Of a stretch of DNA of 64,000 nucleotides, positions 1 through 61,900 are shown piece after piece. Under the pieces are notes generated by a model. It had not been told where the DNA came from, did no database searches, and saw only the letters and a list, made by a program, of their open reading frames with translations. Within the stretch, counting starts at the first letter, position 1; each line of letters starts with the position of its first letter. Location: the NCBI GenBank assembly GCA_002269645.1, contig NIVC01000933.1:62001-126000 (forward strand). The letters are read 5' to 3'. The position numbers and the translations under genes are program-made. Source of the DNA: Macrostomum lignano (Eukaryota).

Positions 1-3000
1 GCCACCGACTGGCAGTCCGGGGCGCCGTGGCTCAGCACGCCGCTCAGCCGGTGCCAGCAGCGGGTCAGAAGCGCCGAGTCGCACGCGGCGCCGAGTAGTT
101 GAGGCTTTTCCATGAAATGCCGCATCATGCGGAGCAGAGTGTTGGCCCGAGCCGCGACCACCGGGCTGACAGTTTTCGAGTCGGTGTCCTGTTAGAAGAA
201 GTACACTAGAACAATCATAACCTGAAGTACATCTGGAACAATCATAACCGGAAGTACATCTAGAAAAATCATAACCGGAAGTACATCTAGAAAAATCATA
301 ACCGGAAGTACATCTAGAACAATCATAACCGGAAGTACATGTAGAACAATCATAACCGGAAGTACATCTAGAACAATCATAACCTGAAGTACATCTGGAA
401 CAATCATAACCGGAAGTACATCTAGAACAATCATAACCGGAAGTACATCTAGAACAATCATAACCGGAAGTACATCTAGAACAATCATAACCGGAAGTAC
501 ATCTAGAACAATCATAACCTGAAGTACATCTGGAACAATCATAACCTGAAGTACACTAGAACAATCATAACCGGCAGTAAATCTAGAACAATCATAACCG
601 GAAGTACATCTACTCGTAGAACAATCATAACCGGAAGTACATGTAGAACAATCATAACCGGAAGTACATCTAGAACAATCATAACCGGAAGTACATGTAG
701 AACAATCATAACCGGAAGTACATCTAGAACAATCATAACCGGCAGTAAATCTAGAACAATCATAACCGGAAGTACATCTAGAACAATCATAACCGGAAGT
801 ACATGTAGAACAATCATAACCGGAAGTACATCTAGAACAATCATAACCGGAAGTACATCTAGAACAATCATAACCGGAAGTACATCTAGAACAATCATAA
901 CAGGAAGTACATCTAGAACAATCATAACCGGAAGTACATGTAGAATAATCATAACCGGAAGTACATCTAGAACAATCATAACCGGAAGTACATCTAGAAC
1001 AATCATAACCGGAAGTACATGTAGAACAATCATAACCGGAAGTACATCTAGAACAATCATAACCGGAAGTACATGTAGAACAATCATAACCGGAAGTACA
1101 TCTAGAACAATCATAACCGGCAGTAAATCTAGAACAATCATAACCGGAAGTACATCTAGAACAATCATAACCGGAAGTACATGTAGAACAATCATAACCG
1201 GAAGTACATCTAGAACAATCATAACCGGAAGTACATCTGTAACAATCATAACCGGAAGTACATCTAGAACAATCATAACCGGAAGTACATCTAGAACAAT
1301 CATAACCGGAAGTACATCTAGAACAATCATAACAGGAAGTACATCTAGAACAATCATAACCGGAAGTACATCTAGAACAATCATAACCGGAAGTACATCT
1401 GTAACAATCATAACCGGAAGTACATCTAGAACAATCATAACAGGAAGTACATCTAGAACAATCATAAACGGAAGTACATCTAGAACAATCATAACCAGAA
1501 GTACATCTAGAACAATCATAACCGGAAGTACATCTAGAACAATCATAACAGGAAGTACATCTAGAACAATCATAACCGGAAGTACATCTAGAATAATCAT
1601 AACCGGAAGTACAACACCTACCTGAGGCCGGCTCCGATCCTCCAACAGCAAGTAGCAGTACTCGCAGAAGTAGCGCAACTGCTGTCCCGGATCGAGTCCC
1701 GGCAGCTCAGTCTCCGGGCTCAGATGAAGTCGCAGCTGGGCCTGCAACGGGCCGAGAGAGTCGGTCAGCCGGCCGAGATGCTGCTGGGTCAGGCCGGACA
1801 ATTTCGCGTCCTTGACAACCGACTGGGCCGCCTCCCTGGCCGAGTCCAGCTGCTCGGCTGAGGCGATGAAAGGCCGCGCTTCGGGCCGACGGTAGGGGGC
1901 CAGCCGTCTGAGCAGGGTGCGGCACTGCCGGGCCACCGTGTCCGCGTAGGCCACCACCAGCGACGGGTGGCCCAGCGACTGGCGGCAGGCCTGCAGCAGG
2001 CCGTCTACAGACCGGAGGCAAGCCGCCTCCTGCTGGCTGCGGGCGGCGTAACCGGCGGCTGATTTTACAGGCTGCCTGTCCGTCTGTCTGTGTGTCTGTC
2101 TGTCTGTCTGTCTGTCTGTCTGTCTGTCTGTCTGTCTGTCTGTCTGTCTGTCTGTCTGTCTGTCTGTCTGTCTGTCTGTCTGTGCGTCTGTCTGTCTGTC
2201 TCTCTGTCTGTCTGTCTGTCGTAGTGTCTGTCTGTCTGTCTGTCTGTCTGTCTGTCTTCCCCTCTCCCAGAAACGCACCCGCACTCTTCAATCGGCTCTT
2301 TAGTAGCGGCCGCAGCCTTCTTAGCGGCTCCGCTCTCAGCCGGTGCGCCAGCGGCCTTTGGACGGGCCGCTCTTGCTGAAGTCTTTTTGCCGACGGCCGC
2401 GGTCGCCGCCGGCCTGGAAACTGAGAAGTCGCTGGCGCTGGTCTGTCTGGCGACATTTTTCTTCCTTGCAGCGGCCTGACCGGTCGCACCTGGCGAAGGG
2501 CCGGTTGTTGCCATTGACGACGAAGACCGCGAGGTTTGACGTCGGTGCGGCTGGTGATTCGATGGCGGCAACTTCTGTCGCTTCTGCTGCTGCTGAGTGT
2601 GCAGCCTGCTGGAGACTTTGCTGACTGACTGGGAGCGCCTGGCCTTGGCGCCTCCGCCCACGTCCATGGCCTGCAGCAGTCGAGTCTGCGCCTTCTCCCA
2701 GGTAGACTGTGCAGTGAAGGAAAAGGTTCGAGTTTTATGGCTACTTGTCAGGTGAGCTGGTCAGCTTGGAGTGAACTCATCGCTTAAAATTTTCATTATA
2801 TGAAAGCAATTATTAGATCTACGAGTTGCGACAGCAAAATTTAACAACACTTTTGATGTATTCTTAAACTCAAACAGACAGACAGACAAACAGACAGACA
2901 GACAGACAGACAGACAGACAGACAGACAGACAGACAGACAGACAGACAGACAGACAGACAGACAGACAGACAGACAGACACTAAGACAGACAGACACTAA

Positions 3001-58900: not shown

Positions 58901-61900
58901 ACAGACAGACAGACAGACAGACAGACAGACAGACAGACAGACAGACAGATAGACAGACAGACAGACAGACGGACAGACAGACAGACAGACGGACAGACAG
59001 ATAGACAGACAAACAGACATACAGACAGACAGACAGACAGACAGACAGACAGACAGACAGACAGACACTAAGACAGACAGACAGACAGACAGACAGACAG
59101 ACAGACTGGCTGACAGACAGACAGACAGACAAACAGACAGACACCAGACAGACAGACAGACAGACAGACAGACAGACAGACAGACACACAGACAGACAGA
59201 CAGACAGACAGACACACAGACAGACAGACAGACAGACAGACAGACAGACAGACAGACAGACAGACAGACAGACAGACAGACAGACAGACAGACAGACAGA
59301 CAGACAGACAGACAGACAGACAGACAGACAGACAGACAGACAGACAGACAGACAGACAGACAGACAGACAGACAGACAGACGGACAGACAGACAGACAGA
59401 CAGACAGACACAGACACAGAAACGCCACATACAGACGGACACAACACACGGAAGACGCCACATCCGCCCCAAATCTCTCAAAATCCCGCGCAGGCAGACG
59501 AGGGATTTGTCCGATCCCCGCCGCCCATCCACCTGGACCGAATCCGACGCATGACCAGTCGCGACCGATCGTTCCTGCGCTCCCCGACCTCCCCGGTGAT
59601 GGCCTCGGCGACAGTGGCGGACCGCCTGTCTGACGGAATCGGTTTGAGAGGCCGCGGCGACGGCTATGCTGGAGCCGGTGGCGGCGGCAGCGGCGACAGC
59701 AACGGGGACGCCACAGACGAAGTCTCGCAGCTCAGGGAGTCCATCGAGCGGATGAGGCAGCGGCAGCAGAGGTTCGGATTTGAAGGGAGGAATGTAGGGT
59801 AGAAAGCAGAGAGCAATGTAGGGAGGAATTTAGGGAGGAATGCAGGGAGGAATGCAGGGAGGAATGCAGGGATGAATCCAGGGAGAAATGTAGGAGGAAT
59901 GCAGGGAGCAATGTAGAAAGAAAAAGAAGATAGAAATATAGAAACAGATGCACTGGGGGATACAGAGACAGCGAGACCGCCATTAACGAAATAATAAAGA
60001 GGATGCAGGAATACAACAGAAACAAATAAAAGTCCAGAGAATCCTTTGATAATGTTCACAGGAGTTCGCTGACCTCCTCTCGTCTGGACGGGCCATCCAG
60101 TCAGCAGCAGCAGCAGCAGCAAAACAACTCTTCCAAGTCCGCTGCTGCACCGGTTAAAAAAATTGAACCCTCTTCGACGTCTGCACCGGATGCTGGAAAG
60201 CAACAGCCACTTGCTGATGCATCCGCCCCCGCATCCGCCCCCGCATCCGCCCCCGCATCCGCCCCCGCATCCGCCCCCGCATCCGCCCCCGCATCCGGCC
60301 TGGCAACCACCCCCGCACCAGCCCCAAAACCGCCCCGGCAACCGCCCCCGCACCAGCCCCCAAAACCGCCCCGGCAACCGCCCCGGCAACCGCCCCATCA
60401 TCCGCTCTCCGATCGGCCAGTAGACCCGCAGCATCGGCCGCCTCCTCCGCGGCAACAAAGACTGCAAGTGAGCCGAATTCGAAAGAAAACTCGGCGGAGA
60501 AGGCCAGTTCTGTGGACTCGCTTCTGGATAGCCTGGCCTTCAATTCGATTCAAGGTGCACTGGAAAAATTCTCCACTGTGGCCGAGGCTGAGACCGCTTT
60601 CGATGAGGAAGATAGTCAGCTGCAGACAGCGGTGAGTAGCTATTGCCGATATGTTGTGTAGGATGCTTTAATGATTTATATAAGTGATTCATTCTGCGCC
60701 CACTGACCCCTAAATTGGCGTCCCCTTGACATGTCAATTTGCGCCTCGATGACACCTAAATTGACGCCTCTCTGACACCTCAATTGGCGCCTCCCTGACA
60801 CCTCAATTAGCGCCTCCCTGACACCTCAATTGGCGCCTCCCTAATACCTAAATTGGCGCCTCCCTGACACCTCAATTGGCGCCTCGATGACACCTTAAAT
60901 TGGCGCCTCCCTGACACCTAAATTGGCGCCTCCCTGACACCTAAATTGGCGCCTCCCTGACACCTCAATTGGCGCCTCCCTGACACCTCAATTGGCGCCT
61001 CCCTAACACCTCAATTAGCGCCTCCCTTACACCTAAATTGGCGCCTCCCTGACACCTTAACTTAGCGCCTCCCTGACACCTAAATTGGCGCCTCCCTGAC
61101 ACCTCAATTGGCGCCTCCCTGACACCTCAATTGGCGCCTCCCTAACACCTCAATTAGCGCCTCCCTTACACCTAAATTGGCGCCTCCCTGACACCTTAAC
61201 TTAGCGCCTCCCTGACACCTAAATTGGCGCCTCCCTGACACCTAAATTGGCGCCTCCCTGACACCTCAATTGGCGCCTCCCTAACACCTCAATTAGCGCC
61301 TCCCTGACACCTCAATTGGCGCCTCCCTGACACCTCAATTGGCGCCTCCCTGACACCTCAATTGGCGCCTCCCTGACACCTCAATTGGCGCCTCCTTGAC
61401 GTCTGAATTTGCCCAACCCAACCGTCATTCTTGCTTGCCAACCTGTCAATCTGCAGCTCAAAGAGGCTGCCACTTTTGACGAGCGGCGGCGCGTGAGAAA
61501 AGCGCTGCGAGACAACAAGCAGAACAAGGGGGAGGTGCTTCGCCTGCTTGCGGCAAGGGGCGGCACTGGAGCCAACAATGGGGCTGCGGTGAGTTTGCGG
61601 TTTTTTGCAAAATCCTCGAGTGCATTCTCAGAGTTTATTGAGAAATTTGGAATTAGAGATAGATGATTTTTGATTGTTTGGGATCTGACATTTAGGATTT
61701 TAGAGTCTGGGATCTGAGATTTGGGATTTTAGAATCTGGGATAAAAGATAATAGGATCAAGACCCCGGGATTTAAAATATTGGGATCAAGAATCAGGCAT
61801 CTATTAAGAATCAGGGATCTAAGATAATGGGATCAAGAATCGGGGAATGGGATCAAGAATCGGGGAATGGGATCAAGAATCAGAGAATGGGATCAAGAAT

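Follow-up and report, generated by a model that had tools for sequence, protein, structure and literature searches.

A shared CTAA variant unit in (GACA)n arrays at unrelated sites of the Macrostomum lignano genome

Microsatellites are usually modelled as independent loci, born and dying in place. Does this model hold for long (GACA)n arrays that carry the same complex interruption at unrelated sites of one animal genome? The question is raised by a stretch of 64,000 nucleotides from the flatworm Macrostomum lignano (contig NIVC01000933.1, positions 62,001 to 126,000; hereinafter the window), in which several GACA arrays contain the unit CTAA. The evidence strongly supports the conclusion that the CTAA-bearing arrays are not independent, being either related copies or partners in sequence exchange. 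They are best regarded as a dispersed tandem-repeat family that a single variant unit identifies, and not as a novel type of element.

Tandem arrays of the window were called with Tandem Repeats Finder, and each GACA array was parsed into GACA runs and intervening material. The window contains four (GACA)n arrays, A1 to A4. A1 (2072-2257, about 39 units) and A3 (51563-52209, about 160 units) lie on the minus strand and read TGTC on the plus strand; A2 (2874-3423, about 130 units) and A4 (58282-59420, about 283 units) lie on the plus strand. The most frequent interruption is CTAA, of which three arrays together hold 12 units. Specifically, seven are in A2, where those at 2981, 2997, 3013, 3029, 3061 and 3077 form a CTAA-rich block (2981-3080, plus strand) and one more, at 3157, lies beyond it; three are in A3 (51797, 51813 and 52021, read as TTAG on the plus strand); and two are in A4 (58621 and 59068, plus strand). 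A1 has a single CTAC unit at 2221-2224 (GTAG on the plus strand), one base off CTAA.

CTAA and CTAC are the only in-register units of the window with at least three differences from GACA. The remaining in-register 4-base variants (CACA, AACA, GATA, GACG, GGCA, GAGA and TACA) are each one base off GACA, and the rest of the interruptions, few in number, are of indel type or composite (CA, CCA and GACTGGCT). The original prediction had placed GACA-CTAA-GACA in arrays at 2872-3420, 51563-52200 and 58280-59415, with the one-base variant CTAC at 2221, and the parsed arrays agree with it at every position. Against a random-substitution model, which it had proposed as a check, CTAA is also in excess within the window: under independent substitution (per-base rate 0.0116, 562 units) 3e-5 CTAA units are expected per window, against 12 observed.

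The 20-base motif CTAA(GACA)3CTAA, which had been noticed at 2981 and 51797, is present at four starts in A2 (2981, 2997, 3013 and 3061, plus strand) and at one in A3 (51797, other strand). Thus, CTAA(GACA)3 makes a 16-bp higher-order unit in A2. In A4, a 43-bp block, GACTGGCT(GACA)5AACA(GACA)2CCA, is present three times (58470, 58681 and 59104), and the CTAA pair belongs to one internally duplicated segment, in which the sequence around the two units is identical over 45 bases to the left and over 39 to the right. The recurrence of CTAA within an array is therefore partly local duplication, seen as the 16-bp period of A2 and the duplicated segment of A4, and the informative count is not 12 units but three or four independent window loci, plus one locus of the public assembly. 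None of the six frames of (GACA)n is interrupted by a stop codon; CTAA or TTAG brings TAA or TAG stops, which at the 16-bp spacing reach all three frames.

The additional locus comes from seven public-assembly loci obtained through GH47 paralogs (among them L001, L003, L004, L005, L006 and L127), which bring the Macrostomum DNA examined to about 230 kb in all. Two of these, L005 and L006, are near-identical to each other and represent one locus, which is unrelated to the window. Both have a GACA array of about 900 bp in an intron of a GH47 paralog, six bases past the 5' splice site, with 12-13 CTAA units in L005 and 10-11 in L006. Both arrays hold CTAA(GACA)3CTAA, as A2 and A3 do, together with a 12-bp period, CTAA(GACA)2, whose spacing in L005 puts all stops in one frame; the CTAA units of A4 are isolated. 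In L005 and L006, CTAA, CACA, AACA and GACG units follow one another in an identical order, while run lengths and block numbers differ, indicating that CTAA is stably inherited as the arrays expand and contract around it. CTAA is thus a heritable variant that is present beyond the window.

At 14270-14460, L006 contains five AAAA units and two AACA units, where the L005 counterpart (14650-14960) is 81 pure GACA units, and the 500-bp flanks of the two arrays are 100% identical. The AAAA cluster reflects either a very high local mutation rate or errors of the consensus within long arrays.

GACA arrays without CTAA are also found in M. lignano. Those of L003 and L004 (26-27 pure units) and of an insertion in L001 (about 11 units) are short. 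L127, a third copy of the L003/L004 locus, has an array of about 220 units (900 bp) with zero CTAA; the variants that it does contain are one-difference units and a CA remnant of 2 bases. Because this array grew to about 220 units without acquiring CTAA, length alone does not create the variant. The three copies of the locus are 93-98% identical, and the orthologous GACA array amounts to 27, 26 and about 220 units (L003 13305-13434, L004 13177-13302 and L127 12290-13200), a large recent expansion. The GATA array that adjoins it has 63, 129 and 107 units, respectively. Across the window and these loci, GATA arrays contain one-difference variants only.

The chance level of CTAA was estimated in unrelated DNA. 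Metagenome contigs were scanned for a unit with at least three differences from GACA between two copies of GACAGACA, and 120 stretches were returned. CTAA accounts for 1 of about 130 such units, near the chance value of 1/108. Most of the matches are short and not true arrays (the longest pure run is 10 units), so that this control gives the chance level only, with no sign of a general bias towards CTAA, and not the behaviour of GACA arrays in other animals. An exact 20-mer carrying CTAA, GACAGACACTAAGACAGACA, has no match in 185,579 prokaryotic genomes. Its single match in viral contigs (L128 1700-1860) is a protein-coding repeat of 12 bp, (Asp-Thr-Lys-Thr)n, with no relation to the flatworm arrays. 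No description of GACA/CTAA arrays in Macrostomum was found in the literature.

Do the arrays share anything besides the variant? The 500-bp flanks of A1-A4, L005/L006, L003/L004 and L001 were compared with blastn at word size 7. At this length and word size, no similarity was found between flanks of independent arrays; only overlapping or allelic pairs matched. A unit with three differences from GACA recurs at four or five loci with unrelated flanks, is at chance level in unrelated DNA (1 in about 130) and keeps its order among other variants in L005 and L006. These observations strongly support the core of the original prediction, namely common descent of the arrays or exchange between them.

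Other array families show how such a distribution could come about. A minisatellite with a 45-bp unit is present at 5580-6094 and 48984-49540, 43 kb apart; the two arrays are 98% identical, and their 600-bp flanks have no similarity. Similarly, a minisatellite with a 15-bp unit (GCCCCTGGTGCTAAA) occurs at 46742-48454 in the window, at 19809-20323 in L005 and at 19059-19417 in L006 with no flank homology. Since these units are too long to arise twice by chance, some process of flank-less dispersal must exist here. Array families in this genome disperse without shared flanks.

By analogy, and in keeping with the original prediction, we favour, tentatively and at a little under an even chance, the reading that CTAA marks one lineage of (GACA)n arrays, a dispersed satellite-like family seeded by flank-less copying. 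It accounts for a diagnostic variant common to unlinked arrays beyond chance (CTAA in A2, A3, A4 and L005/L006, CTAC in A1). Three adjacent substitutions, with no intermediates and no possible template within a tract of GACA, suggest that the unit originated once and then spread. Specifically, a complex change from GAC to CTA would have occurred once, in an ancestral array. Pieces of that array, without flanking sequence, would then have been copied to new sites, perhaps by re-insertion of extrachromosomal circles or by capture during break repair. Each new array would subsequently have grown and been reshuffled locally by slippage and unequal exchange. Local growth and reshuffling did give the 16-bp unit CTAA(GACA)3, the 12-bp unit CTAA(GACA)2 and the large internal duplications. 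GACA arrays that arose in place, such as that of L003/L127 beside GATA, would be expected to be free of the CTAA tag.

Several observations weigh against flank-less seeding. The roughly 230 kb of Macrostomum DNA contain just five independent long arrays. The division into two classes of array depends on a single long array without CTAA, and at the low CTAA density of A4 chance could account for that absence. No insertion signature or empty site was found at any CTAA-bearing array, and seeding is therefore proposed by analogy with the 45-bp and 15-bp families. Besides CTAA(GACA)3CTAA, no multi-variant haplotype is common to the loci. A stronger form of the reading, in which M. lignano has active copy-and-paste of naked tandem-array DNA into introns and intergenic DNA without transposon sequence, appears unlikely on these data. 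If true, such copy-and-paste would explain why this genome is so exceptionally rich in tandem repeats, and CTAA would be a genealogical tag with which to trace and date it.

The main rival is inter-locus (ectopic) gene conversion, in which the arrays were born independently in place, long and near-identical GACA tracts recombined, and conversion tracts spread CTAA together with its 16-bp context. We consider it possible, if rather less than probable. The original prediction had offered it beside a retroelement tail and templated repeat addition, the last of which the data neither favour nor disfavour. Conversion needs no flank homology and so matches the negative results for flanks, inverted repeats and direct repeats, and the context CTAA(GACA)3CTAA is common to three loci. 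CTAA is confined to arrays of at least 500 bp and is missing from the short ones (L003, L004 and the L001 element). A precedent is the documented conversion between microsatellites of Y-chromosome palindromes (PMC4233959). However, no other complex variant, whether GACTGGCT, CCA, AAAA or runs of GGCA, is common to the arrays, and the array of L127, with its ~220 units, has zero CTAA. Conversion also leaves the flank-less dispersal of the 45-bp and 15-bp minisatellites unexplained, so that another process is needed anyway.

An assembly or polishing artefact, by which CTAA from one or a few true arrays was copied to others by multi-mapping polishing reads or arose as consensus error, is improbable. 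A substitution of three bases is, to our knowledge, the typical error of no sequencing platform. The CTAA units of L005 and L006 correspond in position, among other variants whose order is conserved, and the regular 16-bp and 12-bp periods, like the large internal duplications that carry CTAA, resemble real array evolution. Moreover, the 900-bp array of L127 received no CTAA. In favour of an artefact, the AAAA cluster of L006, opposite a pure tract in L005 and between flanks that are 100% identical, hints at an imperfect consensus within arrays, and the public assembly mixed PacBio, Illumina and 454 data for a genome whose assembly is very difficult (PMC5730564).

Distinctly improbable, too, is a mobile-element tail or internal array, in which a non-LTR retroelement or a foldback/MITE-type (miniature inverted-repeat) transposon would scatter (GACA)n with CTAA. 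Mobile elements that carry a GACA tract do exist here. The L001 insertion is a foldback-like element of about 700 bp (15412-16115) with inverted arms of 15-bp subrepeats, a central (CTGT)n and a 9-bp target-site duplication (GGCACCAGT); the corresponding empty site is at window position ~17700. Retroelement tails are also known to give rise to microsatellites (PMC3812793), and an AT-rich flank on one side of A2, A3 and A4 would fit tail-only insertions. However, no conserved sequence lies on either side of the arrays, no inverted repeats flank A3 or A4, and no direct repeats of at least 7 bp bound any array, so that target-site duplications were not found. The arms of the L001 element have no match near the window arrays, and its element-borne (CTGT)n tract contains no CTAA. 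On these grounds a transposon origin of the CTAA arrays finds no support, nor does the retroelement tail put forward by the original prediction; insertions of a tail alone, whose edges have since eroded, may be possible.

Recurrent origin, by a sequence-specific mutation or by selection that repeatedly makes CTAA in long GACA tracts, is very improbable: CTAA could be read as the common 2-base CA remnant plus an inserted TA that restores the 4-base register, and CTAA/TTAG might be selected for adding stops or AG to an open, AG-free UGUC transcript, but the parsed arrays contain no intermediates (for instance CTCA, CAAA or GTAA), CTAA is at chance level in the metagenome DNA, a T-A-A template is absent from both strands of pure (GACA)n, every stop falls in one frame at the L005 spacing of 12 bp, and arrays lie in both orientations relative to transcription (A1 versus A2). 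A small inversion, a hAT-type excision footprint and borrowing from GATA or CTA arrays were considered as sources of CTAA, and a branch point or stop codon as its role; each fails to reproduce C-T-A-A or to fit both orientations and spacings.

Flank-less seeding of a CTAA-tagged lineage has its closest analogues in the dispersed euchromatic satellites, which spread and homogenise between loci; transposon-associated families and Bkm-type repeats are more distant. The Drosophila 1.688 and Rsp-like satellites have been proposed to move through extrachromosomal circles and inter-locus conversion. Like the arrays described here, they form numerous short arrays, unlinked and frequently within or close to genes, with shared diagnostic variants, no transposon flanks and local higher-order repeats. 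Their monomers are 100-400 bp long, whereas here a 4-bp microsatellite has a single diagnostic variant unit. Stable variant units are also found in compound or interrupted tetranucleotide microsatellites such as the human TCTA/TCTG forensic loci. These resemble the present arrays in motif class (GATA/GACA) and in that variant units are stably inherited and duplicated with their neighbours. Their interruptions are locus-specific, in contrast to CTAA, which recurs at unrelated loci.

In Bkm-type GATA/GACA repeats (PMC2346481), long GATA and GACA arrays are likewise interspersed in one genome. The corresponding tracts here are (TAGA)310 at 10108-11350, (AGAT)~400 at 26417-28046 and the GATA-GACA composites of L003, L004 and L127. 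We know of no CTAA variant described for Bkm repeats, and Macrostomum lignano is a hermaphrodite. Transposon-associated microsatellite families (PMC3812793) also explain non-independent microsatellites at many loci, and one foldback-like element with a GACA tract is present in L001; unlike in such families, conserved flanks, inverted repeats and target-site duplications were not found around the CTAA arrays. In the conversion between Y-palindrome microsatellites (PMC4233959), alleles move between loci by recombination and not by slippage. Kilobases of homologous arms guide the transfer there, whereas the repeat is the only homology here.

The complex unit CTAA thus provides evidence of a shared history among long GACA arrays that lie unlinked in one animal genome. 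If confirmed genome-wide, it would be a simple marker with which the spread of tandem arrays in M. lignano could be reconstructed. As a practical warning, such arrays are not independent markers and are risky for short-read polishing. The M. lignano genome is reported to consist to 15% of simple and tandem repeats and to contain 180 Mb of near-identical duplicated blocks, and its unusually high simple-repeat content is an obstacle to assembly and genetics (PMC5730564).

Within the window, about 35 separate tandem arrays with units of 2-50 bp make up 39% of the sequence, and several occupy most of an intron. A1 takes up nearly the whole of an intron of a minus-strand gene, and A2 lies in the next intron of the same gene, beginning about 15 nt past the 5' splice site (reverse complement of ctcacctgcag at ~3437). 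The exon between the two, an open frame at 2258-2700 on the minus strand, places both arrays in introns. A1 and A2 are opposite in orientation relative to transcription, and as inverted copies (186 nt, 94% complementary) they bracket this exon. (GACA)n and (UGUC)n in the pre-mRNA could pair across it, to judge from complementarity. Pairing of inverted repeats across an exon is known to favour exon skipping or circular RNA.

GACA arrays start 6-22 nt past intron 5' splice sites at window positions ~3437 and ~2280 and at L005 ~14612, and at all three places the array and a short unique tail make up nearly the entire intron. A short motif, CTCACCTGCA, stands beside both A2 and the L005 array; it is the reverse complement of the 5' splice site CAG|GTGAG.

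The open frames of the window include a GH47 alpha-mannosidase, a DEG/ENaC-type channel, a copper monooxygenase domain and a retroelement RNase H. A Macrostomum lignano protein matches the GH47 frame at 92% identity; an exact look-up of this frame returned no record. Protein searches with the gene adjoining A1/A2 and with the ASC channel open reading frame gave no match, nor did an Rfam scan of the window. Window positions 8817-26200 are colinear with the public M. lignano contig NIVC01001581.1, at 90-97% DNA identity, as would fit another haplotype or a duplicated copy of the region. The GH47 gene region is present as two tandem copies in L001 (4646-6213 and 10441-13087) and as one in the window (11349-14076); the annotation of L001 covers the second copy only.

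A 3.75-kb insertion that resembles an LTR (long terminal repeat) retroelement lies at 19879-23631 and is missing from the public contig. It has the termini TGTAG...CTACA, a 5-bp target-site duplication (ACTAT), 60% G+C and an RNase H frame at 21552-22157, and its recognisable terminal direct repeat is just 101 bp long.

Finally, a minisatellite with a 24-bp unit (GGCGCCAACCCTGACACTAAAATT) at 56701-57581 includes the 8-mer GACACTAA, which is found at every CTAA interruption. This match is probably a coincidence, with ~0.05-0.1 expected by chance. A related array with a 23-bp unit, 75% identical to the 24-bp minisatellite, is present at 60696-61400.

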